Shown in pieces: positions 2,165 through 62,274 of a stretch of 64,000 nucleotides of DNA. The DNA is from Takakia lepidozioides (taxonomy: Eukaryota > Plantae > Bryophyta), in the NCBI GenBank assembly GCA_030704615.1, contig CM060734.1:23002001-23066000 (forward strand). Direction: 5' to 3'. Made by a program: the position numbers and the translations under genes. A model generated the notes under the pieces. The model was not told where the DNA came from. It worked only from the letters and a program-made list of their open reading frames with translations, and made no database searches. Every line of letters starts with the position of its first letter. Position 1 is the first letter of the stretch.

Positions 2165-2186
2165 AACGAAATGAAAGACATGGGAC

Positions 2187-8673: not shown

Positions 8674-9147
8674 AATCAGTGACAGGTGGGCGCACAATAA
8701 CTTCAGGAAAATGGCTGACGGAAGAAAGGACGGAAACCAGTTAAAAAATGGACACGTGGAAGTCAGGGCGTGACACACAGCTGAGAAGGAAGTGCAAGAA
8801 CAGGTGTCATCAAGAAAGAAGACAAGAATGGCCGTCAAAATACCTAATCAGTGCGTCAAATTGGATGAAAGGCGGGCCCATTAATGAATACGGTAAAAAG
8901 GGGAACGGAACAAACGGCAAGTACAGAAAAGCGAAATTCTTGTCACATGTGTGATCCTAGTGGACTATCCAGCAGGGAAAGTCCACTAAAGAAAATGAAA
9001 TCTAAAATCCAGTCACAGCGGTTACAGCCAATAGAAAGCCAGAGAAAGGATCAAGAAATTGGAGGGAAATTAAGCGCAAGAGGCGGCGTCGTTCTGAGTA
9101 ACGGGCGTCTCGACGGGACAGACCATCAATGCTATAGCTTGGAAACT

Positions 9148-12100
9148 ATGGAGGAACTAACAGACTATACTCTCGCAATATTACTTACGCAGTGGCATAG
9201 ACACGAAAGAACAGAGCGGAGCTTTTCTCTTGAGCGATGCTTGCAAGCCCCGCAGGCTTACAAGAAATTACCCATAGCTTTTTGTGGCAACCATACGTTT
9301 ATGCTTTGTGCACTACAGCATTTCTGCAGTTGTTACAGCCAAAATATTTCTGTGGGTCTAAAATGAAGAGAGTGAGAGGAATGGAGGAAATCAGGGTGAA
9401 GAGCACCACAATTCTGCAGAAACAAACGATTGCTACCCCACAGGCGATACAGATACTGAAGGAGCTGAGATTGCAAGGATTGCAAAGCATAGATTAGACA
9501 TTGCACCATAGACAGTACATGTTACAATTCTTGCAGAACTTTGAGCCAAGGACAAGAACAACAACGGTGAAGGGAGTTGAATTAGTAATTACTCCCCTAT
9601 ACCTCCAGCAATTGTTTCGATTGCCAGCAGGTCAGGTGCATGTGGAGGAGCACAGGGCAAGACTGCAAATAGGGGACTTATTTCAAGAAGGGAGTTCTTT
9701 AAAACTCAGATTATGCTTGTACCAAGGTCGTGTACCCAGGGATAAAGGAGGTAGGCCAGGTATTGAACGTTCTGATTGCCATGAAACAGAACCAACAATA
9801 TTTGAGCAGATCCTTCACGGAGGAAATACTCAAAGCCCTGAAAGGACAAGAGGTAGAATGGGCGGACATAATGTACAACGCACTGGTAGAGGAGATGAAA
9901 AGATTACAAGGTACTACCGCAAAGTCTCCTGTCATAGTGTCTGGCCCAATCATTGCTCAAATAATTCTTGATTCTGGCATACTTGATGCGCAAGAAAGAA
10001 AAGAGATGGGAGTGTTTGAGCCAGAAACCACTGCAATGGAAGAGCAAGGCTCTTCACACAGTGAGGGTGGACTAGCAGGGCAACCTGAGACTAAAAGGCA
10101 GAGACGGGGAAAGACTGTAGTGGCGGATCCATTGGCTTCACGGATTCTGCATGATAATGTTTCCCAAGCTCATGTGCAGGAAGGGGCAAGCAGCACAGAG
10201 AACTGCTATTACTGGAAGCAGGACCTTCAGAGAGGGAGGAGGAAGTTACTTCAGTATCACAACCATCACAGCCAGCTGATCGGCTTGTCACAAGGTTACA
10301 AGTTGTCCATGTAGCTCAACCAGAAATAATTGATTTGGAAAAAGAAGGGTTAGATATTCCAACTACAGAACAGATAGTGGCAGAAATTGAGAAGGGGGAC
10401 CTTCTCTATGAATATTCTGGTCTGGTCAAAGAGACAGAGATTCCAGAGGTGCAACAGTTGCCCAAGGGAAATCTTGAGGTACATATAATACACACACCTG
10501 TGTCGGAGGTACCACAGGTAGAATGTCGAGACACTCCAGCACCGGTGATGGATGAAGTGGTTCAGGAAGAAAATCCGGTGGGACAATGGCCTGAGTGGTT
10601 CGTGAGACATCACACGGTTGAGGATCAGGAGGAACAGCAGCAACCTCACCATGATGACCCTCAACAGGCAATGCTGATGAGTTCCATAGGCATGACACTT
10701 AATTTGTTGGGGACTTATGTCAAATCCCATGTTCCAACTACCCAATTGACAACCTTGAGAGAGGAACTCAGGAAGGAGTTTGAGGCTCAACTAGCCACTG
10801 AGTGTGCAAACAAGGTCGATGAGGAGGTCACTCTCAAGATGCAGCAGGACTTGCAAAATACAGAAGCAGCTTTGCAATTGGCCAAGGAACAATTGATTGA
10901 GGCAGGCCTCGCGCAAGACCAGTTGCACGAAGCACATAAGCAACAGCTATACCAAATGCAGGTGCAGCATGAAAGCAAGTTGCAAGAAGTGAATGCACTA
11001 CATACGGAGTTGCAGACAGTGCATGACAGGATGGCGATACAATGTGCTACATTCACAACTATGCTTGACCAATCTACAAAAGAAATAAACAGTCAAGCGG
11101 AAAAATGTACGAAGGCAGAACAAGAGAATGTTGAGCAAATGAAACTCATTGTCGATATGAAGAATACAATCTGTCGCAATGAGGATACTTTCAAGCAATA
11201 CAGGCAGGTTGAAGCTGACCAAGAGAAGTACATCATGGAGTTGCAACAAACACTCGTGGCCAATAGAAATGAAATCTCGGTCACTAACAAGGCTTGGAGG
11301 GAAGCTAATAATCTACTTGCTGCCTATGCGAATTTGGTTGAACCTCATGCGAAGCGCATGGAGGCTTTACAACAGCAGTTAGAAGTGTACAAACTCAGAG
11401 AGGAGCACACTCTCAGAGGAACCACAAGCAATTGGTGGATAACAGCCTTATGCAGGTCTGGTTAGCACAAGGGCCAGTGGAGGGTAAAGCACCACGAAAG
11501 CTCACCCAAAGCGAGATGAATGAGCTCAGACTGCAAGTGCAGAACATTGCCACAACTACTATAGACAATGTCTATAGTAGATAGCAGAGTTACAGGAGGA
11601 TGTAACGGACTGCAGACTCAAGTGGAGGACCTCACTTCAAATATCGACAAAAGAGTCTATATCCCTCAGGAACAGCTAATGGCTTCTTATTTACAAGCCA
11701 GAACTTTGGCTTTTCAGTCTTCACAGGAGGTGCAGGAGATGCCAATGATACAAGAGCCAGTACCACCAGCACCACAACAAGTCACTGTACCAGTAGCTGA
11801 ACCTGTTGTTACTACAACCACACCACAGCCACCACAGCCTGAGGTATGGGGCAATGCTGTTTTTAACCCACCTAAAACTCCAGCTGCAAGGGAGTACAGT
11901 AGGGCTATGATTATGCCCTTCAACCAAATTCCCATCATGTTGGATTTGGCTTGGAAAGAATTTAGTCCTCCGCAGTCATTCGCACATTACTACCAAATCA
12001 TGCGTATTTGGCTGCCAGTGGCAACTAGGACTAAAGTTCTTCCGAACAATCGACATATTGAGGATCATCACTTTGCACAATACTGGCATGAGGCAAGTAC

Positions 12101-12912
12101 AATGTTGAAGGAATTAATTGCCTTCCAAGTTGTACATGGACTCATTTATACCAAGACCAAGGTAGCAAGTATTGTCATGGGATGCAGGTTATACTACGCT
12201 ACTTGTTTTCTGGTACGTTATCACATTGAGCAGCATAAGATGCAATCGCGCTTTCTGAGTTATTCCAGTGGAGATCATTGGGTCTTACCTTCAGTACCAC
12301 CTCATATGTACCTATATGAGGCAAAAGTTATGATGCAAAAGGATTCTCAAATTCGTTCATGGTTTCAAGCGGCCTGGAACAATTTGTCAACACAGAAATT
12401 CGGCATTGATGATATTTTCTATAAGGGACATGTGGCATGGAAATACTTGCACGGTGCACAAGTAATTGGTACCCCACTCACCTGGACAGACAAGGAGCTC
12501 AAGTGTCTTCACCAATTTTGCTGTTCAGCATTTACAGCAAGTTGTAAAATATAAACTTCCAGACATGGTAGGACAACATTGTATGCCCCAGAGGATTCCA
12601 CAAAAAGTTCGACAATTAAAACACCTGAGAGGCGATGAGGATTCTGATACAACTGTTTCTTCAGCGGATTCTTTTGACATGGGATAAGACTATGCAATAC
12701 AGATGGCAGAGAAGAAGCGACGGGGATCTCCTATGCCTGAAAGGTTACCTCGATATCAGCCTCCAGAGGGCCTCACTTATCCGGGTAGTGTTCAAACATC
12801 TCCGTCAACCAGTGACAGACCTCGGGCTCGTACACACAGTCCGCCACGAAACTCTCAACGTCAGAAAGGTGCTCACTCACAAGGTTTGCTAATCGCAATC
12901 AGTAAACCGTGA
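9148..12912 (+). pseudogene. Extra sense ORF3 of Gypsy-1 (~1,250 codons once frameshifts are bridged): Athila env-like/plant-transposon-protein-like N-terminus, long coiled coil, unknown C-terminal domain
   Basis: ORF pieces 9237-10314, 10335-11465, 11568-12912 are colinear with Gypsy-2 28736-32477; motif QFLQNF..T.V(K/R)GV...ITP.YLQQLF.LP; heptad E/Q/L-rich segment. Confidence 0.7.
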
Positions 12913-14127: not shown

Positions 14128-15338
14128 TAAGGAACTGGAAAATGGCAGGTGAGAGAGAGAGAGAGAGAGAGTGTACAGAAACCACTAAGTACACTGGTCA
14201 AGAATAGAGAGGGAAGATACTATGTCTTGTCGGGACATGGACAAGACCAAACAAGGTCTTTGTCAAATTAACGACAAATCAGCCTCAAACAAGGCACTAT
14301 CTAACTTCACTTCCATAGGCAGTATCTTAACTGATAAAAAACTCATGTCATCTCCTGAAAAACACATGAATAATTGGGTGGGAGGGTGGGATTTCCAAGA
14401 CAACCATCACCCTAGATTCAGAATATGTCATTCATCATTGAAGGAGTCTTGTTTTCTTATAAAACAATCGGGACCAACACCACCTTGGTACATACCACAT
14501 CAGCATAAACACTTGAGCCTTTAAGAATGAGTTGCAGGTGTTGCAATTCCAAGAGCCCAGCCTGATAATGTAGACCAGCCAGCATGCTATGTCTATGTTC
14601 CATGAATGCACAAAGGTCTGGATCTGGTTTTCCAATCATCTCTCCAAAACTCAATCAGAGTGGAGTGCTACAATGAGCATAATCAGAACTTTATAGACAA
14701 CACCAACTCCAAAGGGTATTCCAAAAGGCTAGTTTGATAAGTTAAACCAGCCCATGTGTATTTTGAAAAAGCCCACAAGACCACTGCTTGGTATTCTTCC
14801 AAGTCAAGTACTGATTGGTACTTTCCAAGTCAAACATAGTAAAATTGAACCTGTTTCAAATTCAAAGGATGGTTCCAATGGCATCGCTTGGCAACCTTAA
14901 AACAGGTGTTATGTAATCTGAAAAGCCCATCATCACGCCAGCTGCTTGGTAATCTCTAAGTTAAAACAGTGTAACCAGGGCTGTTTTAATTTAGAACTCT
15001 GACCTCAATGTTCAAAAACTACCGCTTGGTACTTACCGTGTTAAATCAGCATAAGAAGGCCTATCTTAAGCATCATTGGATAGCTTATAAGGTCTGGAGA
15101 TGGTACTCCAGCACCATATCAAAATGTAGCCGAAGCTCAGACTGGTATCATGCCAGAAAACTGATTTACAATCGGGTCGAAAACCCCACTAATTGGTGCC
15201 AAAGTTCAGACTGGTATCTACAGAAAAAAACTGACTTATAATCAGGTTACAACCCATAAAAACCAAAAAGGATTAAGGTGAGAGGCCGAATCGTATCAGA
15301 TGCCCCACTGAAGCAGTATGTAGCGTCAATCGTCACCA
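14128..15338 (+). repeat. ~1.2-kb duplicated segment, copy 1 (copy 2 at 33938-35164), with a (GA)n microsatellite
   Basis: Near-identical sequence from AACTGGAAAATGGC to GTAGCGTCAATC.TCACCA in both places. Confidence 0.9.
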
Positions 15339-22024: not shown

Positions 22025-25000
22025 ATGAGTGATGAAAGAGAAGCTAGACTCCAGAGATATTCAGCAAAAAGAGAAAGTTATCTTAAAGCTAATTATCCAT
22101 ATCTTTGGGAGAGATGAATAGACATAGGGGAATCATCTGGACCTCTCACACCATTAAGATCAGAGAGTACATCACCCATACCGGAAGAACTAGAGTTGGA
22201 TGCCACTCCTTCTTTTTCTTTGCAAGAAAGATTAAGGGAATTGGTACGGGAAGAAGATCAACCACGAGGTGAAAGATCTGAGGTACATCCCTAGATAAAA
22301 GATTTGACAGAAATCTTTGATAAGAGTTGGCATGGAACACCAAAAGCAGGAACTCCAGTTTCTGAAACGGAAGATGAAGAAGGAGGAGAGGATGTGGCAG
22401 AACCAACGGAGAGTTCAGACTCTCCAACACCATTGCAGTTGAGTTACATGAGTGAAGAAGAAACCCAAGGGCAGAACTTGGAGGATGAAAACAGAGAGAA
22501 GAAATTGGAAGAGGAAGAGTATGAAGAAGTAGACCCAACAGCTGAGGTTGAGACTACAACCAGGACATCCCAACCCGTTGCACTTGGATCACAGGCCAAC
22601 GAAGGTGTCGGCTCAGGGGGATCAGGCGGGCAGCCTGGATCTGGCTCTGGGGGGACAGGGAGTGTGGAAGTAGTGCAGCTGGAGCTGGGAATACTGTGAA
22701 TATCGTGGGGCCAGTAGCAGGGAGTGCTCAGGGGCTACCACTGGGTGGAAGATCCACCACAACTACAACAGGTCCTCAGGGACCAGCACCAGCTGTCAGT
22801 GGGCAGAAGGTAGGGCCACAGATGGCGTTACAACCAACACGGGCAAAACCACCTTTTCCAATATATTCAGGAAAAGGGGATCCCGATGTACACATTAGCC
22901 AATTTGAGCACATGTGTATATTGAACAATGAGAATGGCGATGATGCCAAGATGAGACTGTTTCCTTGTTCACTTATCAAGAAAGCAAGTGAATGGTATGC
23001 AAGATTCCCTGATAATCATTTCCTAACCTGGAATGGCTTGAATACAACATTCCGAAATAGGTTCAGGACAAGTAAAACTGAGGATGAAGTGTATGGAAGT
23101 TTACAACAGTTAAAGCAGAAGAAGCATGAAATTGTTGAGGAGTATATGGAAAAAATGGAATTGATGATGAAAAAGCTGGCTGCTGTACCAGCACCAGGTT
23201 TACAGAAGACTTGGTTTGTGAGTGGACTAAGACCAGAGTTGCAAAAGAAAGTGGATATGTTACCCCATAATACAATGGAGGAGGCATTTGAAACAGCGAA
23301 CAGAATTGAACAATTGGGAATGCTCAGGAGAGAGAAAAAGGATGATGAAGACTCTGAGGATGAGTCAGATGAGGAAGAAGAGCAAGAGCTGAAAAGGAAG
23401 AGTAAGAGAAAGGAGAGGTTGAAGAGGGATAACTATGAGAAAAGATTAGAAGAAATCTTGAAGAAGTATGCCACAGAGGCTACAACACATTGGAGGAAGG
23501 GTGTTTGGTGTGCAAAGTGCCAGAATGAAGGCCATACCACCAATGAATGCCACATGAAAGAGAAACACTGTACTATCTGTAAGATGGATAACCATTCTAC
23601 TGAGAATTGTTACTACAACAGAAGAACAACAACTAGAGAACCTAGGCAAGTAAGGGTGCATCAAGTGCAGCCCCAGCCAAGAAGAAACAGTGATCAGGAC
23701 CACTATGGTAGGCCTGGTGGTTATAACAATGGCATGGAAGGGAGAGGTAATCCAAGAGGGAATTACCAAGGAAATTCCAGGGGCAACTATCAGGGTAATC
23801 CAAGGGGGAATTACCAGCCAGGGAATCAGGATTACAGAAATAATCCAAGAGCAGACCAAGGGCGAGGACCCAATGGTGAAGAACTGTGTTACTATTGTAA
23901 TCAGCCAGGACATCGCAAGGCAGCCTGTTCATTTTGGATTAGACACCAGAATGAGATGAGAGCTCATGTGAATGAGGGCCCAGTGGTGGCAGCTCACATG
24001 GTTAGGCCATGTGTTGTACCAGAAGTAAGTACAATGATAGTAACGAGAAGCAAAGCCAAACTAATACCCCCAGTAGTTGAGGAAGATGATGATAATGAAG
24101 ATGGCAGTGATGTACCTGAAGATGATGAGGCTTGGAGAGATGAGAAAGAACTGCACAAAGAAGTGGCAGATACCATAAGGGAAATGCAGAAGAGTACTGA
24201 TATTCCTATGACAGATTCCTCTGATTCTGATGGAGAAGAAGAAGTGAGTGAGGATGAAAGGAAGAAAGAAGCTGCTGACATGCAGAGTAATGAAGGGACT
24301 TTGGCTGAAGTAATATGCCAGACCAAAGCGGAGATTACCATTGGACAGCTATTGGCTGTGGCACCTTATTGTAGACACAGGCTGTATCAAGCAATCAATC
24401 GAATTGCCCATGTGACAGGGAACACAGACCTGAACAGCAAGGTGACCAGTTATAATGTGAAGCCGGAAGGGCGAGAAACAGTCATGGACTTTGATGATTC
24501 TATGCCAGTAATCCAATTGAGAATTGGAAGCACAGAACTAACTGATGTACTGATAGATGGAGGCTCTGGAGTGAATATCATGACAGACCAATTAAGGCCA
24601 AAACTTGGTCTAAGTAACATGAAACCAGCCCCATTTACAGTAACAATGGCAGATCAAAGAAGTGTACAGCCATTGGGATTGATAAGAGGAGTTAAGATAC
24701 AGATTCAAAAGATGATCTTTATGATCACAGTAACTGTGTTGAAAATGGATGAAGTCATGGAGGCTTACTCCTTATTATTGGGACGTCCGTGGCTGAAACA
24801 GGCCAGGGTATTCCATGACTGGAATTCCCAGTTACTAACTGTGCATAATGGGATGCACAAGATACAAATTACCACTAAGAAATCTAGTAGATTACCTGCT
24901 ACGAGAAGACCTCGAGGGGTCAGGGAGTATGACTGGAGGGGAGGACTGGATGAGGAGCAGGAAGCTACCCTGTTCGTGCACACCCAGAGTGGGAGCAGGT

Positions 25001-28000
25001 TGCAGAGATGCAGCTGGAAGGCCTAAGTTGTTTAAAAGGTATCTGCTGTGGTGTAGTGACAGCAACACCAATTGAAGGTGAAATAAGCAGTTACCCACCA
25101 CATTTTTATGAAGAAAGAGAAGGAGAAATGAAAATCCTAGAGGAACCAGCCACTGTGAGTTTACAGGATGAAGTGGTGACTGGTTGGACAATCACAGCTG
25201 ATGAGCAGGTGAGAGAAGTGAATGTGGGAACTGAAGAGGAACCGAGGATGGTGAAGGTAGGGGCTGATTTGGAGCCAGAATTCTTTGAGGAAGCTAAGAG
25301 TTTGTTCATCAAATACAAGATGTATTTGCTTGGAGCTACGAGGATCTAAAAGGGATACCACCTGAGATCTGTCAGCATAAGATTGAACTGGAACCAGGGT
25401 CAGTACCAATCAAAGAGGCAAGGTACAGAATGAATCCCAACTATGCACAGAAGGTTGGAGAAGAGATCAAGAAGTTGGCTGAGGCTAAGTTTATATACCC
25501 GATAGAGTATACAACTTGGTTGTCACCCATTGTGATAGTTCCCAAGAAGAATGGTAAACTGAGAGTTTGTGTGAACTATAAGAAGTTGAATGCTTGCACG
25601 AAGAAAGATCATTTTCCTTTGCCATTCACAGAAGCGGTATTGGACACTGTGGCAGGCCATGAGATGTACTCATTCATGGATGGCTTCAGTGGTTATAATC
25701 AAGTGCAAGTGGCAGAAGAAGACCAGGGAAAGACGGCTTTCATCACAGACTGGGGTGCTTATGCATACAAAGTCATGCCTTTTGGACTTTGTAATGCACC
25801 AGCAACCTTTCAGAGAGTGATAAGTGAATCTTTTCATGAGTATCTGGATGATTTCATGCAGGTGTTCTTGGATGATTTCAGTGTGTACAGCTCTAAGAAT
25901 GAGCACTTGCATAAATTGGAGTTATGTTTGGCCAGATGCAGGATGAGAGGTCTGGGCCTGAATCCAGAAAGTGTACTTTCTGTGTGAACTCAGGGGTGCT
26001 TTTGGGACACATTGTGTGTAAGAGGGGACTTCTTGGGATCCCAGGAAGACAGAGGCCATTAAAGCCTCTCCACCACCAGTAAATGTTAAGAGTCTAAGGA
26101 GATTCCTTGGACAAACCAGTTATTACAGAAGATTTGTCAAAAGGTATGCACAGATAGCAGCACCATTGAGCAAGCTTCTGAAGAAAGATGCAATGTTTGC
26201 ATGGACAGCTGAATGTCAACAGGCTTTTGAGGAACTTACATTGTCAGTAACAACTACACCTGTGCTGATTAACCCTCACTGGCATGTAGTATTTCATGTT
26301 CACTGTGATGCCTCAGGAGAAGCGTTGGGAGCGGTGTTAGCCCAAAATGTTACAGGAAATATAGATTCACCTGTGTACTATGCTAGCAGGTTGATGAACA
26401 GTGCTGAAAGGAACTATAGCACAACTGAAAGAGAAGCACTGGCAATGATTTATGCAGTCAAGAAATTCAGGCATTACCTATTGGGAAGAAAGTTTATGTT
26501 TTATGTGGATCACCAGGCTTGATATATCTGGTGAACAAACCTTTGATAAGTGGAAGGATAGCGAGGTGGTTAATAATCTTGCACGAGTTTGAGTTCGAAG
26601 TTGTTTACAAGCCTGGCCGTTTGCATCTTGTGGCAGATCATTTGTCACGCCTAACAACAGGAGAGGCCGCCACAGGAGTAGACGACCAATTACCTGATGC
26701 GAGTTTATTTGCAATGGAGGTGCAAGGAAGTGCAGATGAATGGTTAGATTGGCAGTGGCCAATCAGATACTACCTTACTCATGGTCAGTGCCCACCTAGT
26801 TATGGTAAGGAGCAGAGGAAGAGAATCGCTATCAAGGCTTTACCTATACTATGGTAGGGGGCAGAATGTATAAGCTAGGACCTGATGGAGTACTTAAACG
26901 ATGCTTGTACCACCATGAAGTAAATAAAGTTTTGGAGGAAGTTCATAAAGGAGTGGCTGGAGGTCATTTTGGAGAAGAGACTACCAGTAGGAAGATACTA
27001 CTTGCAGGTTACTGGTGGCCTACTTTGTTCAAAGATGTACACAAGTATTGTCAGAGTTGTGATGAATGTCAGAGGCTAGGACCTTTGCAGAGATCTGGGA
27101 AGATGGCTTTGCATCCTACAATGCCTACTGAACCATTTCAGAAATGGGGACTAGACTTTGTTGGACCAATTAACCCACCGGCCAAGAATACACAGAACAA
27201 GTACATAATTACAGCCACTGATTATACTACGAAGTGGGTGGAAGCTAAAGCTTTGAGGGACAACACAGCCAAGTCCACAGCAAGGTTCCTGTATGAGAAC
27301 ATACTTACACGATTTGGCTGTCCCTTGGAATTTATCAGTGACCAGGGAAGTCACTTCATTAATGAGACCATTGAACTATTGACTAAAGAGTTCATGATTG
27401 TGCATAGGAAGAGTACAACGTATTACCCACAAGGTAATGGGCAGGCAGAGGCTACCAACAAAATACTATGTACTATCTTGGCTAAGATAGTCAATGCAAA
27501 CAGAACGGATTGGGATACAAAGCTGCTGACAGCTTTGTGGTCATACATGACTTCATATAAAGTCACCACTAAGTATACACCATTCCAATTAGTTTATGGT
27601 ATGGAAGCTTTACTTCCAGTGGAATTCTTGTTACCTACCATGAGAACGGAATGGGGAAAGAGAATGGAATTGGAAGATTCAATTAAGGTCAGGAAACATG
27701 AATTATACCATGTGGAAGAAGTACGTGCTGATGCAGCTGATAACATGACCAGAATTCAGATGAAGAGGAAGGAACAGTTTGATGAAGGCAAGTTAAAGAC
27801 TTTTAAGACGGGAGATTTGGTTCTCTGGTTGCAGAAGAAGGGGAAGATTAAAGCTTATAAGCTTAAATCACCATGGAAAGGACCTTATGTCATACAGAAG
27901 ATGTATGATAACAACACAGCCATATTACAAACCATTAACAAAGAGATGCTGGGAAGAGTCAATGCCAATAAGTTGAAGGGGTACATTGGTATTCATGACA

Positions 28001-28119
28001 AACCATTGCAGCACGATTTGCATGTTGAAACGCAAAAGCAGTCACGGGCTGCGCCAGTGATACCAACGGAGTATGGAGCACTTGTCGCTAAGCCGAGCGT
28101 ATATGACCAGGGCGGGTAG
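22025..28119 (+). pseudogene. pol: gag-pol of Gypsy-2 with stops and frameshifts
   Basis: ORFs 22696-25026 (gag+PR), 25430-25987 (RT), 26166-26857 (RH), 26851-28119 (INT); same motifs as Gypsy-1. Confidence 0.95.
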
Positions 28120-28735
28120 TACAAGCGTGACACAGCCTATCACAGCCTAACACAGCATGACACAGTCTATCACAGCCCATCACAGTGCCACACAACCTAT
28201 CACAACTCAACACAGCCTACCGGGGTTACACAGTCCCTAGGATCAATGACAGGTGGACGTGGGTTAACATCCGAAGAATGGCCGGCGGAAAAAGTGGATG
28301 GAGGCAGGTTTAGAAATGGACACGTGGACGCCAGGGCGAGACACACAGCCGGACATGAATTGCAAGAACGGGTGTCATCAAGAAAGAAGACAAAATTGGC
28401 CGTCAAAGTACCTACCCGGTACAGCAACTAATTGTGGGTCTATTAATGCATTCAGTGCCAGGGTAACGGAACCCTTTTCGAGTTCAGAAAAGGGAAACCA
28501 ATGCCACATGTGCTATCCTAGTGGACAGTCCAGGGGGGAAAATCCACGGAAGGGAATTAAATTACAAAACCAATCACAGAGCCAACAGCCAATCATGAGC
28601 CAGAATTACCTGCACAGGGTATTTTCCAAGAAGCAAAATCAAGAATTTAGAGGGATTCTGAGCGTAAGAGTCGGCGTCGTTCCAAGTAACGGGCGTCTCG
28701 ACGGGAGAGACAATCAAAGCTATAGCTTTGACGCT

Positions 28736-31700
28736 ATGGCGGAAATAACAGACTACACACTCGCATTACTACTTACGCAGTGGCACAAGGACGGACGAGC
28801 GGAGAGTACCTTTTCTCTAAATCGATACTTGCAAGCCCCACAGGCTTACAAGCACTTACCCATTTCATTCTGCGCCAACCATACTTTTATGCTTTGTACC
28901 CTGCAGGCGTTTCTTCAGTTGTTGCAACCAAAACCTTTCTGTTTGTCTAGAATAAAGAGAGTGAGAGGAATGGAGGATATCAGGGTGAAAAGCACCACAA
29001 TCTTACAGAAGCAAACGATTGCTACACCACAGGCGGTGCAGCTACTGAAGGAGCTGCGATTGGAGGGATTGCTACGCAAGGACTGGTCCTTGCATCATCG
29101 GCAGTTCATGATACAATTTCTTCAGAACTTTGAGCTTTGGACAGGAGTTACTCAGGTGAGGGGAGTAGATATAGAAATTACTCCCCAGTACCTGCAGCAA
29201 TTGTTTGATTTGCCATCAGGACATGTGGATGTGGATGAGCACAGGGCAAGATTGCAGATAGGGAATTTGTTCCAAGAAGGGAGTTTCTTTAAAACTCAAG
29301 GTTTTGCTTGTACCAAAGCCGAGTACCCAGGGCTTAGGGAAGTTGGCCAAATCTTGAACGTTCTGTTTGCCATGAAACAGAACCAACAGTATTTGAGCAA
29401 GTCCTTCACAGAGGAGATCCTGAAAGCTTTGAGGGGAGAGGATGTCGCTTGGGCGGAGTTAATGTACAATGGATTGGTGGACGAAATGAAGAGGTTACAG
29501 GGCACTGCTGCTAAGTTTCCCATCATTGTGTCCGGACCAGTCATTGCCCAAATAATTCTTGATTCTTGCATACTTGATACTCGGGAACGTAGGGAGATGT
29601 GAGTGTTTGAGGCAGAAACCACTGCAATTGAAGAGCAAGGCTCTTCACACAGTGAGGGTGGACTGACAGCGCAACACCAGTCTAAGAGACAGAGGCGGGG
29701 TAAGACTGTAGTGGCGGATCCACTGGCTTCACGGAAACCGCACGATAATGTTTCCCAAGCTCTTGTGCAGGAAGGGGCACAGCAACATAGAGAGCTGCTA
29801 TTATTGGAAGCAGGGCCTTCAGAGAGGGAAGAGGAAGTCACTTTGATACCACAGCCACAACAACCAATTGACTCTGTTGCATAGTTAGTATATGCTGTAG
29901 CATCACCCCCAATTGTTCTGGAAGGAGAAAGGTTGGACATTCCCACTACAGAGCAGGTCGTGGCCGAAATTGAGAAGGGAGACCTTTTCTATGAAAATTC
30001 TGGCTTGGTAAGGGAAACAGTGATTCCAGAGGTGCAGCGGTTGTCCAGGGGAAACCCGCTGTGCATGTAATATCCACACCTGTGACGGAGGTACCAGGGG
30101 TAGAATATCAAGACACTGCAGCACCTGTGGCGGATGAGGTGGTTCAGGAAGAAAATCTGGTGGGGCAATGGCCTGAATGGTTCGTGAGGCATCACACTGC
30201 TGAGGATCAGGGAGAACAGCAGCAAGCTCACCATGATGACCCTCAGCAGGCCATGCTTATGAGTTCCATAAGCAGGACACTTAATTTGTTGGGCACTTAT
30301 GTGAAATCCCATGTTCCATCTACCCAATTGGCAGCTTTGAGGGAGGAGCTCAGGAAGGAGTTTGAAGCTCACCTTGCCACTGAGTGTGCAAACAAGGTCA
30401 ATGAGGAGGTCACTCTCAAGTTACAGCAAGAGTTAGAGGATACAAAAGCTGCTTTGCAGTTGGCCAAGGAACATTTGATTGAAGCAGGCCTCGCACAGGA
30501 CCAGTTGCACAAAGCACATCAGGAACAGCTATACCAAATGCAGGTGAAGCATGAGAGCAAGTTGCAAGAAGTGAATGCACTACATACGGAGTTGCACACA
30601 GTACATGAGAGGATGGCTATACAATGTGCTACACTCACAACTACTCTTCAGCAAACTACATTAGAAATTAACAGACAAGGAGAGATATCAATGAAGGCAG
30701 AGGCAGAGAATGTCGAGCAGGCGAAACTCATTGTTGATATGAAGAATACAATCTGTCGCAATGAGAATACTTTCAAGCAATACAGACAGGTTGAAGCTGA
30801 CCAAGAGAGGTACATCCTGGAATTGCAACAAACGGTCATGGTAAATAGAAATGAACTCTCTGTGGCTAACAAGGCTCGGAAGGAAGCCAATAATCTGGCT
30901 GCTGCCTATGCGAGTTTGGTTGAACCTCATGCGAAGCGCATGGAGGCTTTACAGTAGCAGTTAGATGTGTACAGGCTCACAGAGGAGCAGACTCTCAGGG
31001 GTGCCACACACAACTTGGTGGATAACCACTTTATGCAGGTCTGGTTAGCACAAGGGCCGATGGAAGGCAAAGCACCACGGAAGCTCACCCAGGGCGAGAT
31101 GAATGAGCTCAGACTGCAGGTGCAGAACATTGCCACAACTACTATAGATAATGTCTATAATAGGATAGCGGAGCTACAAGAGGATGTAAAAGGACTGCAG
31201 ACTCATGTGGATGACCTGACTTCCAATATTGACAAGAGAGTCTTTGTACCTGAGGAGCAGCTGATGGCTACTTATTTACAGGCCAGAACTCTAATTTTTC
31301 AGTCTTCTTCGCAAGGGGTGCAGGAGATGCCAGTGGTGGAAGGGCCAGTGTTACCAATACCACAACAAGTGACTGTGCCAGTAGCTGACCCTGTTGTTAC
31401 AATAGCCACACCACAACCTGAGGTATGGGGGGATGCTGCTTTTAACCCACCTAAGACTCCTGTTGCACAAGAGTATAGTCGAGCTATGATTATGCCCTTC
31501 AACCAAATTCCCATTGTGTTGGATTTGGCTTGGAAGGAATTTAGTCCTCCGCAGTCGTTGGCACATTACTACCAGATTATGCGCATTTGGCTGCCAGTGG
31601 CAACTACGACTAAGGTTCTTCCGAACAATCGACCCATTGAGGATCATCACTTTGCGAGGTACTGGTTTGAAGCAAGTACCATGTTGAAGGAATTAAGTTG

Positions 31701-32477
31701 TACATGGGTACATTTATACCAAGACCAAAAGAGGTAGCAAGTATTGTCATGGGCTGTGGATTATACTATGCTGCTTGTTTTCTGGCACGTTATCACATTG
31801 AGCAGCAGAAGATGCAATCACGATTTCTGAGTTATTCCAGTGGGGATCATTGGGTCTTACCTTCGGTGCCATCTCCTATGTACCTATATGAAGCAAAGGT
31901 TATGATGCAAAAGGATTCCCAACTTCATTCATGGTTTCATTCGGCCTGGAACAATTTGACAACACAGAAATTCGGCCCTGACGATATTTTCTTTAAGGGA
32001 CATGAGGCATGGAAATACTTGCACTGTTCCCAAGTGATTGGCACACCTCTTACCTGCACAAATAAGGAGTTCAGAACGTTCCCTAATTTTGCGCGCCAAC
32101 GCTTGCAACAAGTTGTGCAATTTAAACTTCCAGACATGGTTGGACAACATTGTATGCCACAGAGGATTCCACTTAAAGTTTGGCCGTTAAAACACCTGAG
32201 GGGCGACGAAGACTCTTATACTACTATTTCTTCAGCGGACTCTTTTGACATTGCAAAAGACTACGCAATTCAGATGGCAGAGAAGAAACGATGGGGATCT
32301 CCTATGCCTGAGAGGTTACCACGATATCAGCCAAAGGAGGGGCTGACATTTCCAGGTAGTGCTCAATTATCTCCGTCAACTAGTGATAGGACTCGGGCTC
32401 GCACACGGAGTCCTTCACGAGACTCTCACCGTCAGAAGGGTGCTTGCTCACAAAGGTTTGCTAATCCCAAACAGTAA
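28736..32477 (+). pseudogene. Extra ORF3 of Gypsy-2
   Basis: MAEITDYTLALLLTQWH... colinear with Gypsy-1 ORF3; ends ~20 nt before the PPT. Confidence 0.7.
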
Positions 32478-40206: not shown

Positions 40207-40641
40207 TGTCAAGTTAAATAAACACAGTGTGAAATTAACTAGAATAAAGCTAGTTATTTGTATTTAACACTTGGATTTAGTTCAAGTGTTAAGTCAGGTG
40301 TGAAGTTTAGGTTGACACCTAAACCATCTTATCTTCACGAGAGCGTCAGTCGTGCGGCTCATCTCTCTCGAGATGAGCCTGCACGACCGAGCTCCTTCAC
40401 TGCTTAGAATCTGAGTGTGCTTATGAAGGGAGAATAGGATATTGTGGGGTGGAGTCCCCATAGCTTGGGATGCCCCTGGCTCGACTCTTAGTTTAACGAG
40501 TGATGGTGATGTATTTCATGTTCTTGTGTCAACAGTGTGATTTTAGTTTTCAATCACTCGAGAGAGATCACGCTATCTAGTTTTCTAGTGCTAAGCTAGA
40601 TATGATGTTTGTTTTAGCACTATTATAATATAACTTGGTAT
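40207..40641 (+). mobile_element. LTR-like repeat (LTR-A) ending in a truncated tRNA-iMet-type PBS
   Basis: Starts TGTCAAG; first ~340 bp repeated at 53394-53734; ends ...ATATAAC-T-TGGTAT. Confidence 0.55.
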
Positions 40642-53306: not shown

Positions 53307-54138
53307 TGTGGCAGACTACTTTATTGTCCATATATGTGTGGTATAGTTTGGACAGCAATGTAGTTGTGTAGCGATACGTATGCGCACAACAGCTGTCAAG
53401 TTAAATAAACACAGCGTGAAACTAACTAGAATAAAGCTAGTTATTTGTATTTAATACTTGGATTTAGTTCAAGTGTTAAGTCAGGTGTCAAGTTTAGCTT
53501 GACACCTGAACCATCTTATCTTCACGAGAGCGTCAGTTGTGCGGCTCATCTCTCTCGAGTTGAGCCTGCACGACCGAGCTCCTTCACTGCTTAGAATCTG
53601 AGTGTGCTTATGAAGGGAGAATAGGATATTGTGGGGTGGAGTCCCCATAGCTTGGGGTGCCCCTGGCTCGACTCTTAGTTTAACGAGTGATGGTGTTGTA
53701 TTTCATGTTCTTGTGTCAACAGTGTGATTTTAGTTGTGGCAGACTACTTTATTGTCCATAAATGTGTGGTGTAGTTTGGACAGCGATGTAGTTGTGTAGC
53801 GATACGTATGCGCACGATAGCCTCCAGTTGATGTCGTGGTCGAAGTCTGGCGATTCAGGGCAGGGGCGAGTTGCAATTTCTCTATTCTTGAGGGATTGAG
53901 CTCCAAATGCAGGTTGTTGGCGAAGGGCTTGTGCATATGATTCCATGCATTGCCCATGAGGTGATGAAGTCGTGGAGCTGATATTGAGCTTGCGAATGCT
54001 TGCTGATGTCTACACAAAGTTTGGCCCAGACTTTCCGAGCTTCAGTTTGGATGTCAAAGAAGATGTGTAGTGTTAGACTACACACTCGCAGCTCTCCAAG
54101 TTGTTCCATAATTTCAGAGTAATAAAGTTTTTGTAACA
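53307..54138 (+). mobile_element. Nested LTR-like pieces: PPT plus LTR-B start (53307-~53387), truncated LTR-A (53394-53734), LTR-B restart (53735-54138)
   Basis: AGGGGGG tract then TGTGGCAGACTACTTTATTG twice; ends AATAAAG...TGTAACA; LTR-A matches 40207-40547; no TSD found. Confidence 0.5.
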
Positions 54139-55853: not shown

Positions 55854-58800
55854 TCAAGTGTCATAGTCATCAGAATCAGTCTTGACCTCCTGTGCTATGT
55901 CATCCACAAAGATTCTGGCCCCAACACCACGTCTTCTACCACGGCCGTCGATGGGTGGACTTCGAGTGCCATGAACGGTCATGCTTGTTGCGAGTGCCTC
56001 CGCATAGACAGGTAGCACGCAAGACCGAGGAGGACTGGAAAGAAGTCCAAATAGGTGTGATAGCCCTGGAGGGCAAGTGGAAGCACGCAGACTCCTGCAC
56101 ATGTCGACAAAAACCCATTCAGAACACAATATGCAATACACAAGTCCAACGAAGAGGATGTCTGCCATGTGAACTTTGCCTCAAGAAGAGTGATTCTCGA
56201 TATTGAAACAACAATGCAAGCATCCACAGGTTGAACTTACTCACAGGCAAAGTCGGAGTCCAACTCCTTGTCGGAAGTCTCCTCTGTATCAATATCAGCG
56301 GGACAGGGCTTCGGAAGGACTTGAGAAGTGTGTCCACCCAAACCCATCAGGAGGTTCTTGTAAATCTCAGCATCCCCTTCAATCCCAAAGAGATGTCGGG
56401 CACTGGCCTTGCAAGCGTGGTACGAAGCACCTGCAGTGGAATAGAATGAAGGAAGCAGACATTGAAGACACATATGGAACGGTGGGAAGTACTGAAAGTG
56501 CAAGCTCAATCAAACCTCATGAAATCCAAATGTTGCAGAGACGAACCTGTACCCATTGACAAATCCAGAACTCTGGCGTCTGTGTAGGTGCAGCACTCCA
56601 CAATCGTTTGAATGAAAGCCGGGCTCCTCTCCCTCGCCCCTCTCCAAGGAACCCCATTCCCCCTTCGCAAGCAGACGTTGCTGTCGACGTAGTTGTGGTG
56701 CATGTCATCCGTGGGAGGATCTATCCTGTCGTCTATGAACTTGCCCCCATGAGTGATGGCGAACTCCGAAATGCCGGCCGGAGTCGTTGGTGGATGCACT
56801 CGGACGAGACAAACAGCTTCAAACAAACGAGTCTGCGAACAACACATCTAGAAGGAACTAAGAAGCTTAAAAATCAGGCCCCTACATATGAGTTCGAGCG
56901 ACCTACACAACTCCATCCGAGAACCACCAAGAAGAGGAAGAAGAAGGCAAATTTACCATCTCTCCCGGACGATCCCCCTTCGTAAGGTACATGCTGTTCA
57001 CACAATTCCATGTCTTCAGGACTCTCATGCCCGAGGCTTTCAAATAGCTGGCAAGTGCACGACGACAACGAACGTCGGCGGACTGTATGAGCACCAAAAC
57101 ACCTGCATCGGACAGGAAAAAATTGCAAAAAGAGAAAACCCACCGCTAGTAGCGCTCATCAAAAGCATTCCAACCCGGACAAGCACCCGATGGAGGGACA
57201 TCCGGGACTGCCAACCCATCAGGGATGTCCAAGATTATGAGTTCGGCTGCATATTGCTTCTCCTTCCCGTTCACCCAGGATTTGGTCATTTTAGCCTGCA
57301 AACAAAATTACAATGGAATACTCAAGAGGATTGAAACGATCCATGCCCACTGCAGAGAAGAAGCAAAAGAGAACACGCACCGTGCCGAGGAACTCTACAA
57401 TCCTCTCCCACACTGGTGATGGCTCGCCCTTGTAATCAGATTTCTTGGACTCCATCATGGCAAGGAATCCGACGTTGGCCATCTCCAACCTGGTAGGGCA
57501 AATGACCCTCGTTGGATGTTCCACTGCATGGTACGGGTCCTTGGGATCAACCACCCCCTTGTTCTTTCTCATGGATCCCCTGCCATGCGGTGGAGTCTGC
57601 TGGACATGCACCACTGGGCCAATATCTGCAACACTTCCCTGCCCTTGTGCCACCTTCCCTCTACCCCTTCCTTTCCCCACAACACCAGCAACATCTTTTC
57701 CCTTTGCCTTTCTACCTCTACCCGGGGTATCCTGAGTGGGAGGCTCCTTCTCTGCAAGAGTCCTCAAATTTCGTTCATGAATGTCGAGGTCGGCTGCTGC
57801 GGCAGTGGCTGCAATTCGCTCATTCTCTCTCCTCAAAGACACCTCCGGAGCTGGGGTCTCAGAAGGAGGGCAATCCAAATACCAACCACAAGAAGAAAGA
57901 TGGTCTGGGCCCCAGTCATGCAAGATCCCAGTAGTAAACATGGTCTGATTGCCAGCAGGGACAAGCCAGAGGTCCACGAAATCTGGATGTTTGTCCAAGC
58001 AATTCTCTTCCATGAGAACAAACTTTATGTACCTGCAGGAACAGAGACAGCCTCATTATGCAATGCAATTATTGTCTCTCAGCTTTTCCATCACACCAGG
58101 AAGACCCCCTTAAACTGTATGCGTCACAGTACATTGCAACCACAGCACACTAAGTAGCCTGAACGGCCCAGGGTGTGCACCTGTAAAGGCATTGTTTCCA
58201 GGCTTCCTCTCCTTTTTCTTGCTGGTCAAGGTCATGTGTTCGACTGATGCCACCCTCCTTGCTGAACTCTCTAAAGAAACAAGAGTGCCACACTGTGGCT
58301 CTCCATTTCCTCATGTATGCTTCGAAGGAGACCTTCGGTGCTGTCATAGTGATGCCATAGTCAGCCAGCTGAGTATGCAGAACCGACCGTGCCCTTTCTT
58401 CCAACTGCAAAACAATTCAAATGCAAGAATGAACCCAAAAAAAATCACAGCGAATGTGAGAGGCAATGGAAAGAGAAGGACAGGAAAAGAGAAAAGAAAG
58501 TGACACAGGAAAGGACATCACACCTGGCTCCAGTAAGTGGCCTTGTGAAGCCATGTGTCTAGCACATTGTCACTGACAGGAATGACACGCCGGGTCTTCT
58601 TCTCTTTCTCCGGCCTGGGGAACATGTGGGTATCCCTAACTGTGGGATCGGAGTTCCATATCTGTAGCCACTTCACCTTTGTTCTGAAGACACAACGGCG
58701 GTAGACAACCTGTGTAACTTCTCCTGGGCCATCTCTGGCTTGCCTGGCTTGTTATAATGGTTTTTTTATCTCCAGGAGAAACTGCGATCCGAATGATGGG

Positions 58801-59960
58801 TCGGCAATTCTCAACTGCTTCACAAAAGCACTCATTATAGTCCTTCTTGTAGCGGTCATCTCTTTTTGGATGTGACTCTCAACCCCCTTTGCTGTCCTTC
58901 TCTCCTCAGGGGTTGACCTGTAGTATTCCAGTTTGCCACGCTCCCCTGCATCTGCAATGTCTTGCTGCAAGGGAATGCACGAGAGTTGCATCAACCCAAG
59001 GGCAAGGGAAACAAACAGAAACAAACATGTGGAAGCAGGAATATGGAAAGGGCAGATGAAGGAAGATGTATTTCACCGTGTACATGTACTCCATGAAAGC
59101 CTCACGTGTCAACGAGTACCACGTTTCCGATGTCTTGGAGCTTTCGCACTTCTTGTACGTCTCTGCTGAAAGGATGGTCTTGAAGTTGGTCAAGGGCATC
59201 TGCCTGATCCTTTGTATCCTATACACTGTGTGAACCAGACTCGTTTTGACATGCGATGTCTCCGTTCCTCTGCAGAATGATATCTGAAAGTCAGAATGAA
59301 ATTCAAGGACTTTAATCAAAGAACCACGGAACTACAAGTGGAACATGTAGAATGAGAAACCAACCTGTTCACATCATTCATTGCCGTTAGAAGACCCATC
59401 ATGTTCCCCTCACAATCCAGCACCATCGATCGAACAAAGTAATGCCACTCTTCCTCTTGTGAGTGCAGCCTCCCAATAACAGCCATCCATGCAAGCAACC
59501 GGTGGTTCCCATCCCAAACGTGAAACATCTTCCCCGAGAATGCCTGGGTGGAAGGTTTCCTGGAGAGAAGAAGTTCGAAGGATTCGTTCACCTGTCTCCA
59601 AATATGATCCCAGGAGTCCACGATTGACTCATCCACAAGGAGCTCATTGCCTGTGGAATCATTTGTACAAACGTAAAACACTTCGGATCCATCCAAATAC
59701 CCATGAACAAACTCGGCCTCTAGCTTGAGAATGTCCTTGATGAGGGGTGGTCGAACGACGGGCATGGAAACCATCCTACACAGGGGAATCTTCAACCTCC
59801 CACCCGGGGCAAGCATACTTTGCACCACAAGCTGAGAGTTTACCTTCTGACCCCCCAGCATCTCAGCGGCTTTGCTTTCATAGAACTCATCGTCAACATC
59901 AACAATGATCTCCTTCCCCAGCCCCGAAGGGATCTCCTCCGCCACACTTTGCATATTCTC
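55854..59960 (-). pseudogene. Spliced gene: ParB/Srx-like N-terminal domain fused to a beta-class N6-adenine/N4-cytosine DNA methyltransferase-like domain (~1,040 aa)
   Basis: Exons 59960-59365, 59269-59077, 58964-58524, 58404-58181, 58032-57381, 57295-56957, 56832-56547, 56430-56245, 56065-55854, all GT-AG and phase-matched; VWDGNHR; ELIILDIPDG; FLSDAGVLVL; ERSPAFIQTIVECCT...VLDLSMGTGASYHAC...RHLFGIEGD; one TAG (57148-57146) and two compensating frameshifts in exon 3. Confidence 0.8.
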
Positions 59961-60053: not shown

Positions 60054-62274
60054 AGCTCAAACAGTGTGCGTTGACGCACACTGTTTGAGCTGCAAGGTAA
60101 GTGTTCATTGAACCTCAAAGACATGCCACGTAAGTGTTCATTGAACCTCAATGAGAAGCCCTTAGTGGCCGATTTTCAGATGAAAAAAAAAGAAAAGGTG
60201 AGCTCAAACAGTGAGCGTTGACGCACACTGTTTGGGCTGCAAGGTAAGTGTTCAGTGAACCTCAGAGACATGCCACGTAAGTGTTCATTGAACCTCAGAG
60301 ACATGCCAGGTAAGTGTTCATTGAACCTCAAAGAGAAGCCCTTAATGGCCGATTTTCAGATGACAAAGGCAATGACAAGGTGAGCTCAAACAGTGTGCGT
60401 TGACGCACACTATTTGAGCTGCCAGGTAAGTGTTCATTGAACCTCAGAGACATGCCCTGTATTGCCGAATTTCACAGAGGAAAAACAGTGACAAGGTGTG
60501 CTCAAACAGTGTGTGGCAATGCACACTATTTGAGCTCCTAGGTAAGTGATGATTGATCCTCAAATACAAACCCTATGTGGCCGATTTTCAGATGACAAAG
60601 GCAATGACAAGGTGAGCTCAAACAGTGTGCATTGACGCACACTGCTTGAGCTGCCAGGTAAGTGTTCATTGAACCTCCGAGACATGCCCTATATTGCCGA
60701 ATTTCACAGGGAAAAAACAGTGACAAGGTGTGCTCAAATAGTGTGCGGCAACGCACACTGTTTGAGCTGCCAGGTAAGTGATGATTGATCCTCAAATACA
60801 AACCCTATGTGGCCGATTTTCAGATGACAAAGGCAATGACAAGGTGAGCTCAAACAGTGTGCGTTGACGCACACTGCTTGAGCTGCCAGGTAAGTGTTCA
60901 TTGAACCTCCGAGACATGCCCTGTATTGCCGAATTTCACAGGGAAAAAACAGTGACAAGGTGTGCTCAATCAGTGTGCGGCAACGCACACTGTTTGAGCT
61001 CCTAGGTAAGTGATGATTGATCCTCAAATACAAACCCTATGTGGCCGATTTTCAGATGACAAAGGCAATGACAAGGTGAGCTCAGACAGTGTGCGTTGAC
61101 GCACACTGTTTGAGCTACCAGGTAAGTGTTCATTGAACCTCCGAGACATGCCCTGTATTGCCGAATTTCACAGGGAAAAAACAGTGACAAGGTGTGCTCA
61201 ATCAGTGTGCGGCAATGTACACTATTTGAGCTCCTAGGTAAGTGATGATTGATCCTCAAATACAAACCCTATGTGGCCGATTTTCAGATGACAAAGGCAA
61301 TGACAAGGTGAGCTCAGACAGTGTGCGTTGACGCACACTGTTTGAGCTGCCAGGTAAGTGTTCATTGAACCTCCGAGACATGCCCTGTATTGCCGAATTT
61401 CACAGGGAAAAAACAGTGACAAGGTGTGCTCAATTAGTGTGCGGCAACGCACACTGTTTGAGCTCCTAGGTAAGTGATGATTGATCCTCAAATACAAACC
61501 CTATGTGGCCGATTTTCAGATGACAAAGGCAATGACAAGGCGAGCTCAAACAGTGTGCGTTGACGCACACTGTTTGAGCTGCCAGGTGAGTGTTCATTGA
61601 ACCTCCGAGACATGCCCTGTATTGCCGAATTTCACAGGGAAAAAACAGTGACAAGGTGTGCTCAAACAGTGTGTGGCAACGCATGCTGTTTGAGCTGCCA
61701 AATAATTGTTCATCGATCCTCAGAGACATGCCCTATGTGGCCAATTCTCAAATGAAAAAGGCAATGATAAGGGTAGCTCAAACAGTGTGCGCCAACGCAC
61801 ACTGTTTGAGCTGCCAGGTAAGTGATGATTGATCCTCAAATTCATACCCTATGTGGCCGATTTTCAGATGACAAAGACAATTACAATGTGAGCTCAAACA
61901 GTGTGCGTTGACGCACACTGTTTGAACTGCCATGTAAGTGATGATTGATCCTCAAATATATGCCGTTTGTGGCCGTTTTTCAGATGAAAATACAATGACA
62001 AAGTGGGCTCAAACAGTGTGCGCCAACGCACACTGTTTGAGCTGTCAAATAGTGGAGAATTGAACCGGGCATAGTGGCCCTATCTGGCCGTTTTTCACAC
62101 CATCAACCAAGTAAAATGCGGGGCTCAAATAGTGTGCGTCAACGCACACTGTTTCAGCATCCAATTCGTGGTGGATTTAACCTACCGTAGTTCCCCTATT
62201 TGGTTGTTTCGCACATCAACAAGCCAGCAAAATGGAAGGCTCAAACAGTGTGCGTCAACGCACACTGTTTGAGC
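60054..62274. repeat. Array of 19 36-bp palindromes GCTCAAACAGTGTGCGT-NN-ACGCACACTGTTTGAGC with 116-bp period (232-bp higher-order A/B unit in the middle)
   Basis: Starts at 60055, 60202, 60384, then every 116 bp to 61892, then 62007, 62123, 62239. Confidence 0.95.

Follow-up and report, generated by a model that had tools for sequence, protein, structure and literature searches.

Proteins that join a ParB fold to an N6_N4 methyltransferase are enriched in phages and prophages (PMC12704722; PMC4738411). Among eukaryotes, the closest published parallel that we found lies in the giant Plavaka (EnSpm/CACTA) transposons of the red alga Bostrychia, which carry two accessory genes, PAG2 and PAG3 (bioRxiv 10.1101/2025.02.11.637652). 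PAG3 combines a ParB-like N-terminus with a 2-oxoglutarate (2OG) oxygenase and is flanked by tandem inverted repeats, its best HHpred match being 7BNR (expect value, E = 0.29); PAG2, which lies in the same Plavaka elements, combines a PF01555 DNA methylase with a SET domain (10.1101/2025.02.11.637652). We analyzed a gene from a stretch of 64,000 nucleotides (nt) of Takakia lepidozioides (assembly GCA_030704615.1, contig CM060734.1, positions 23,002,001 to 23,066,000 of the forward strand), hereafter the window, in whose coordinates positions are given unless a locus is named. An earlier reading of the letters alone (the original prediction) had proposed here an intron-containing fusion of a ParB-like domain to an N6/N4 amino-methyltransferase, and its remark that such fusions are typical of phages agrees with PMC12704722. 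With a probability of roughly 0.6, we read the window gene as a decayed copy of a multi-copy plant gene that is accessory to a DNA-transposon-like element. The product of the gene consists of four parts: a ParB/sulfiredoxin (Srx)-fold module that keeps the arginine of a DGNHR motif, a middle region of ~500 residues, a PF01555-type fold, and a short acidic tail. Our literature search found no published description of a plant family of this ParB-methyltransferase-like kind.

The gene was rebuilt from open frames and splice signals, and its coding total is 3,156 nt, that is, 1,051 codons plus the TGA at 55856-55854. The gene, its exons, and the motifs and stops within them are as follows:

55854-59954, minus strand: whole gene, nine exons and eight GT-AG introns; a pseudogene copy with colinear homologues on other contigs
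59954-59365, minus strand: exon 1, codons 1-196, with the ParB/Srx-like domain at roughly codons 48-196
59513-59499, minus strand: DGNHR motif (codons 148-152) within VWDGNHR, a G-x-x-R type motif of the ParB/Srx fold, in which the arginine is the phosphate-binding residue
59269-59077, minus strand: exon 2, codons 197-261, in which the conserved middle region begins
58964-58524, minus strand: exon 3, codons 262-408, middle region
58754-58752, minus strand: in-frame TAA (codon 332), in an exon 3 block that aligns to sense codons of locus L007
58404-58181, minus strand: exon 4, codons 409-482, middle region
58032-57381, minus strand: exon 5, codons 483-700, including a Gly/Arg/Lys-rich low-complexity stretch
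57295-56957, minus strand: exon 6, codons 701-813, in which the methyltransferase-like domain starts, with the motif IV position and FLSDAGVLVLIQ
57229-57215, minus strand: DIPDG within ELIILDIPDG, at the position of catalytic motif IV (canonical DPPY)
57148-57146, minus strand: in-frame TAG (codon 750), in a conserved exon 6 block that is intact in L007
56832-56547, minus strand: exon 7, codons 814-908 plus one base, with WRGARERSP and the first half of the S-adenosylmethionine (SAM) loop (VLDLSMGT-G)
56430-56241, minus strand: exon 8, with the remainder of the SAM loop (G-ASY) and the FGIE strand, whose acidic E926 is at 56380-56378
56094-55854, minus strand: exon 9, the C-terminal tail with FVDDIAQE (55910-55887), the acidic end and the TGA stop

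All eight introns run from GT to AG and are 85-148 nt long. They are richer in T than the exons (40% vs. 23%) and lower in G+C content (0.43 vs. 0.51). Intron 7 interrupts the codon for the SAM loop's final glycine, and a GTAAGT donor at the junction of exons 8 and 9 keeps the conserved FVDDIAQE tail in frame. By tblastn, every exon has matches in colinear copies on further contigs, at E values between 1e-62 and 1e-9, and because each of them aligns in this way the gene model is not a product of chance. The gene had been placed at these coordinates with eight GT-AG introns, ~1,040 codons, and a SAM loop split by an intron; the placement, the introns and the split loop are confirmed, on the minus strand and with a codon total of 1,051. 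The motifs quoted at that time (VWDGNHR, ELIILDIPDG, FLSDAGVL, ERSP, VLDLSMGTG, and RHLFGIE) are likewise all present.

The window copy is a dead, decayed pseudogene with two nonsense codons, from which the full protein cannot be made. The TAG had been seen earlier as the one stop of this copy; it is indeed there, and the count was wrong, the TAA at 58754-58752 being a second. We saw no frameshift along the nine-exon model. Two ways of rescuing the reading frame were considered and rejected. The TAG does not lie inside a short intron, as the conserved block aligns straight through it to L007, and the TAA is not hidden in an intron either, as its block also aligns through to L007. Neither stop can be explained away by splicing, because L007 has sense codons across the aligned blocks that hold them.

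Exon 1 (196 amino acids, aa) was searched in a full HMMER pass over 1.84 billion representatives, which returned 547 relatives, mostly short first-exon fragments (175 with E <= 1e-10). In an alignment of 51 relatives (A1), N150 is invariant, and G149, H151, and R152 are each conserved in at least 90%; among the 95 retained sequences fitting the motif pattern, 77 read DGNHR and 13 read EGNHR. The AlphaFold2 model of the exon-1 domain, computed from the relatives' alignment, reached a predicted local distance difference test (pLDDT) value of 90.7. When this model was compared with the PDB by Foldseek, ranks 1-47 were all proteins of the ParB/Srx fold (Noc, ParB, PadC, KorB, sulfiredoxin, SerK, SbnI, and Atu1540-type proteins), with a probability of up to 0.99. 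A viral structure library searched by Foldseek was likewise dominated by ParB/Srx proteins, with one mycobacteriophage 'DNA methylase' among the matches. The model and its matches show at moderate strength that the N-terminal domain has a ParB/Srx fold. The assignment would hold at the level of the fold only and does not extend to membership of the canonical parS-binding ParB proteins. The ParB-like domain of the original prediction was thus recovered as a fold (pLDDT 90.7, with weakly scoring Foldseek matches to ParB/Srx structures), and not as a Pfam or profile match.

For the C-terminal part, profiles and predicted structures argue strongly, at the level of the family, for a beta-class N6/N4 methyltransferase fold, as had been proposed. 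Two proteins of the liverwort Riccia sorocarpa pass the curated PF01555 (N6_N4_Mtase) cut-off of 26.7 bits, P0169 with 31.7 bits and P0175 with 27.0 bits, the latter match covering profile positions 16-217 of 221; other members fall just under the cut-off. The uninterrupted open reading frame (ORF) of L004, which is 47% identical to the window over exons 7-8, matches PF01555 (E = 1.3e-4) and a phage DNA-methyltransferase PHROG (E = 4.4e-6). A family profile from a second alignment (A2), which includes the exon pieces of the window, found M1.HpyAVI (1.4e-6) and CcrM (5e-5) among PDB sequences. Because the C-terminal domain of the window copy is split by introns and a stop, we folded a Riccia relative instead. 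The resulting model of P0169 (pLDDT 71.8) has CcrM as its best Foldseek match (E = 2.6e-12), further matches being M1.HpyAVI, M.BceJIV, MboIIA, RsrI, the rotifer N4CMT (E = 5e-9), and PvuII. PHROGs, NCBIfam, and PADLOC gave methyltransferase matches for the C-terminal part only. Alignment A2 shows the permuted order of the beta class, with the motif IV strand first and the SAM-binding motif I last, near the C-terminus.

The motif IV position reads D-[LMIVC]-P-x-G in nearly all copies examined. Exceptions are a few D-h-S-S and degenerate forms, and the motif is degenerate in two stop-carrying copies. The loop as a whole, D-h-P-x-G-L ... P-x-W-N, is kept across lineages that are only ~25% identical. 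The SAM loop reads D-L-S-M-G-T-G-A-S in the window and D-F-A-G-G-W-G (GGWG) in Riccia; several lineages lack its first glycine and read S-T-G. The acidic residue after strand 2 is kept, in F-G-I-E in the window and in V-A-E in Riccia.

Between the two domains lie ~500 conserved residues, including a Gly/Arg-rich linker, that match no recognised domain. This middle region belongs to the family, because homology to Riccia proteins spans residues 55 to 536 of the model; searched as single exons and in ten long homologues, it has no Pfam match, and its sequence profile has no match in the PDB. A 213-aa ORF on the plus strand (57516-58157), antisense to exon 5 over the Gly/Arg-rich low-complexity stretch, is taken for a chance ORF. 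At the C-terminus, a (F/Y)VDD(I)AQE motif and an acidic tail are common to the window (55887-55910) and Riccia P0143, and P0175 has the looser FVDDEANE.

The gene belongs to a multi-copy family. Its named long relatives come from R. sorocarpa, which has tens of gene models in the family, and from the ferns Adiantum nelumboides and A. capillus-veneris; many further unnamed relatives sit on metagenome contigs, and homologues are present on chromosome-scale liverwort and fern assemblies. A metagenome scan yielded 43 loci, none of them more than 47% identical to the window copy, and the family alignment, run against viral contigs, gave 48 pattern matches, of which 0 were confirmed. Many copies carry stops. 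The full-length architecture is the same in the Riccia proteins and on L002, L003/4, L007, L011, L013, and L047. Introns vary among the copies: intron 1 is missing from L003, L004, and L007, introns 5 and 6 are missing from L002, and intron 7 is common to the window, L002, L007, L013, and L047 and missing from L003, L004, and L011. Such presence and absence could serve to date intron gain and loss in a mobile gene. UniRef names several Riccia members (P0163, P0165, P0166, P0170-P0172, and others) 'Trimethylguanosine synthase'; this label is probably a mis-annotation, because the sole profile support is for the N6_N4 DNA methylase family.

Comparison of four Riccia loci revealed a second conserved block upstream of the ParB-methyltransferase gene, which encodes an unnamed protein of ~860-920 aa with a Cys/His-rich N-terminal part. 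Of the related loci with sufficient flanking sequence, roughly half, Riccia copies included, have this neighbour gene within 10 kilobases (kb). It is divergent, upstream, and ~2-6 kb away in L001, L008, L009, L010, L011, L012, L017/L036, L043, and L054, which amount to eight distinct loci of different lineages, and it is downstream on the same strand in L038 and L040/L041 (two distinct loci), so that ten distinct loci have it overall. Its coordinates in five of the loci are:

L001, 5772-7683, minus strand: neighbour gene
L008, 5783-7588, minus strand: neighbour gene
L009, 1365-3379, minus strand: neighbour gene
L011, 2984-4759, minus strand: neighbour gene
L012, 2446-5077, minus strand: neighbour gene

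A search of the window for a homologue of the neighbour gene found none; the sequence stops 4 kb upstream of the ParB-methyltransferase gene, and the expected position is beyond base 64000. The family of the neighbour is itself very multi-copy (329 proteins, all unnamed, with no Pfam domain), and its core has the conserved blocks W..FD, HVYD, CDMQSED, GFMADS, C..HW, and N.AE. We interpret these blocks as the D, D, E, and C-x-x-H signature seen in cut-and-paste transposases, a reading that no profile or PDB search backs, and on this pattern the neighbour is possibly an unclassified DDE transposase. It has no profile similarity to a CACTA Transposase_21 ORF from Riccia. At two Riccia loci, a unit of 10.8 kb that holds both genes is duplicated at 97% identity with sharp ends. 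In L001, a second tandem array, of a short CCAGCGG-N-CCGCTGG-type palindrome, lies downstream of the Riccia gene and inside this unit (14652-15166).

From the recurrent neighbour gene, we regard this family of non-seed plants as probably transposon-borne. An origin of this kind had been called probable in the original prediction, and the copy number, the many decayed copies, the recurrent neighbour, and the 10.8-kb Riccia duplication all support it. The observation made at that time is confirmed, and the interpretation given to it is supported as regards the two folds and the transposon link; the horizontal acquisition and the methylating activity that it also put forward are proposals at this stage, no close relative having come up in the viral contig scan.

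Immediately upstream of the gene, the window contains a further feature:

60055-62274, no strand: palindrome array, 18 copies of 36 base pairs (bp), with 16-nt arms and a 4-nt centre, starting 100 bp upstream of the ATG

The palindromes are perfect or near-perfect and mostly 116 bp apart, forming a 116/232-bp tandem array; 18 were observed vs. 0 expected, and none occurs elsewhere in the window. L012 (with seven copies) and four Riccia loci (L001/L010, L008, and L009) have repeated palindromes at this position too, but different ones. The proposition that such an array always accompanies the gene was rejected on account of the metagenome-contig loci that have the gene and no array, so the association of palindromes and gene is real in some lineages and not general. 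In L012, the 5' end of the gene is locally duplicated: two 211-aa first-exon ORFs (7018-7653 and 9385-10020) lie 2.4 kb apart, with palindromes in the interval and around the pair.

In intact relatives, the N-terminal module and the region that follows it would bring the protein to the DNA of its own element, and palindrome arrays adjoining the gene, as in the window, are the leading candidates for its binding sites. The methyltransferase-like module would bind SAM and act on the DNA of the element. Any chemistry would be non-canonical, because the loop reads D-h-P-x-G and not (D/S/N)PP(Y/F/W). Judging from residue conservation, we lean slightly toward an active site that is still used over a pure scaffold, because the loop is kept across lineages of ~25% identity while two stop-carrying copies have lost it. 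A more specific proposal is that intact members form a self-marking system of the transposon, in which a nucleotide-dependent ParB-like module would load at parS-like, lineage-specific palindromes between the divergent genes, and the fused methyltransferase would deposit N6-methyladenine (6mA), N4-methylcytosine (4mC), or another methyl mark on the DNA of the element, altering host silencing or transcription. We consider a system of this full description unlikely.

Several results weigh against the reading of the window gene as a decayed accessory gene of a DNA-transposon-like element, or against parts of that reading. On the side of mobility, the neighbour gene was not found in ~10 further loci whose upstream sequence extends for 5 kb or more, and it has no Pfam, PDB, or profile match; neither terminal inverted repeats nor target-site duplications were found around the Riccia unit or between the flanks in the window; and repeated palindromes are absent upstream of the gene in 23 metagenome-contig loci (20 from the metagenome scan plus L002, L003, and L011). 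On the side of the domains, no ParB domain was found by Pfam, PHROGs, NCBIfam, or PADLOC in exon 1 or in P0001, the N-terminal family profile returned only a spurious eL24 match from PDB sequences, and the Foldseek scores of the N-terminal model are weak (E = 0.004-0.02 at best, template modelling score 0.3-0.5). The exons of the window, searched singly against Pfam, gave nothing at E up to 1, exons 6 to 8 being individually too short to score, and the modelled relative P0169 is just 20-28% identical to the exon pieces of the window in alignment A2. No copy examined has (D/S/N)PP(Y/F/W) at motif IV; DPPY, SPPY, and NPPY are all absent and the aromatic residue is always missing, which justifies the caution voiced in the original prediction about DIPD. 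In known enzymes of this methyltransferase class, a missing motif IV aromatic accompanies loss of activity, as in METTL14.

What the methyltransferase-like fold does admits two alternatives to a non-canonical active site. An active writer of 6mA or 4mC, like CcrM or M1.HpyAVI, would make the family the equivalent in plants of the 4mC enzymes known from rotifers and Marchantia. Such a writer would fit the best structural and profile matches, which are active beta-class DNA methyltransferases, as well as the retained SAM loop (G-x-G in the window, GGWG in Riccia), the retained acidic residue after strand 2, and the conserved D and P of the motif IV loop. We nevertheless find such a writer rather doubtful, given that no copy has the canonical motif or its aromatic, that the window copy is broken, and that MpDN4MT1a/b of Marchantia carry TSPPY and are hence of a different kind; a relation of the family to MpDN4MT1 was rejected on these motif grounds. 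The loss of the aromatic in all copies, and that of the first SAM-loop glycine in the lineages that read S-T-G, would be expected of a pseudo-enzyme, that is, a dead methyltransferase-like scaffold or SAM sensor in a protein whose role would be confined to that of an accessory factor for DNA binding or regulation. METTL14 offers an example of a conserved inactive partner in the methyltransferase fold class. A pseudo-enzyme is a serious candidate, although the conservation of D-h-P-x-G-L ... P-x-W-N at ~25% identity exceeds the apparent need of a scaffold, and we hold it tentatively, at clearly less than even odds.

The other two alternatives concern the origin of the gene. That tens of gene models occur in one liverwort genome, with many stop-carrying copies across the family, is hard to reconcile with a gene family of the host that has expanded or been domesticated and is not element-borne, for which the neighbour and the palindromes would be coincidental repeats. 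Such a family would agree with the ordinary, plant-like introns, with the lack of the neighbour gene in about half of the flanked loci, and with the failure to find terminal repeats or target-site duplications. It is at odds with the orientation and distance of the neighbour, which are constant in eight distinct loci of different lineages, with the sharp-ended 10.8-kb unit duplicated at 97% identity, and with a window copy that is itself dead and sits among Ty3 elements, and we judge it improbable. That this is not a plant gene at all, being contamination or the remnant of an insertion from a virus or bacterium, is very improbable: the domain pair is typical of phages (PMC12704722) and the named structural relatives are all prokaryotic or viral, but eight introns of spliceosomal type interrupt the gene, plant Ty3 elements lie on both sides of it, homologues occur on chromosome-scale liverwort and fern assemblies, and the viral contig scan turned up no relative.

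Ty3/gypsy elements fill the rest of the window, and the gene copy is embedded among them. The polyprotein of one of them (ORF 5718-7889) has land-plant elements as its nearest relatives, the best named full-length matches being from liverworts (49-51% identity); the window has a plant character and is not of human origin. Two direct repeats of 342 bp, 97% identical to each other (40207-40548 and 53394-53735), bracket Ty3/gypsy ORFs at 40.6-50.5 kb and are probably the two long terminal repeats of a single Ty3/gypsy element. Arrays of 120-bp tandem repeats and an internal duplication of roughly 1 kb occupy 50.7-53.1 kb. Two further Ty3/gypsy-type elements, at 1469-12554 and 22696-32477, encode gag, reverse transcriptase, RNase H, and integrase, and also bear long extra ORFs without a Pfam match (10335-11465 and 28298-29602).

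To our knowledge, land plants mark their DNA almost solely with 5-methylcytosine, and the sole plant 4mC writer that we know of is a canonical host enzyme. On the preferred reading, as an accessory gene of a DNA-transposon-like element, the family would place a domain pair of bacterial or phage type in the mobile DNA of liverworts, of ferns, and of the source of the window. Members of the family are candidates, in plants, for DNA modifiers or chromatin-targeting factors encoded by transposons, and their D-h-P-x-G loop is a natural variant of a catalytic motif.

The family shares with the phage fusions the order of the two modules, a ParB-like part at the N-terminus and a beta-class amino-methyltransferase at the C-terminus, and the association, in the plant case a probable one, with mobile elements. 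It differs from them by ~500 extra residues between the domains, by spliceosomal introns and a eukaryotic genome context, and by the loop, D-h-P-x-G vs. DPPY; the viral contig scan detected no close phage relative. With the bacterial beta-class enzymes CcrM, M1.HpyAVI, M.BceJIV, M.MboIIA, and M.RsrI, it has in common the fold and the permuted motif order; its SAM-binding region aligns with theirs (E = 1e-6 to 5e-5), and the Foldseek matches have E = 1e-12 to 1e-9. In contrast to these enzymes, the plant protein is large, multidomain, and eukaryotic, its family has replaced DPPY, and no common target-recognition region is recognisable. N4CMT of bdelloid rotifers and MpDN4MT1a/b of Marchantia also represent a bacterial-type PF01555 fold in a eukaryote. 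They keep SPPY or TSPPY, however, have demonstrated activity, and are host genes rather than members of a decaying multi-copy family, and the parts of their descriptions available to us report no ParB-like domain.

The likeness to the Plavaka accessory genes of red algae, drawn from their described features, is broader. Both sets of genes are eukaryotic, multi-copy, and, in the plant case probably, transposon-associated, and both include a PF01555-type domain. In both, the ParB-like domain is visible to remote methods only, and 7BNR, the best match of PAG3, is also among the top Foldseek matches of the window domain. Tandem inverted-repeat arrays adjoin the ParB-like gene in the red algae and, in some lineages, in the plant family. 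The plant family differs in that its hosts are land plants, its catalytic loop is altered, Pfam finds no oxygenase or SET domain in it, and its neighbour gene lacks profile similarity to a CACTA transposase; it also fuses both modules in one protein. Together with the red-algal Plavaka genes, the plant family points to repeated capture of ParB-like and amino-methyltransferase modules by the DNA transposons of eukaryotes.

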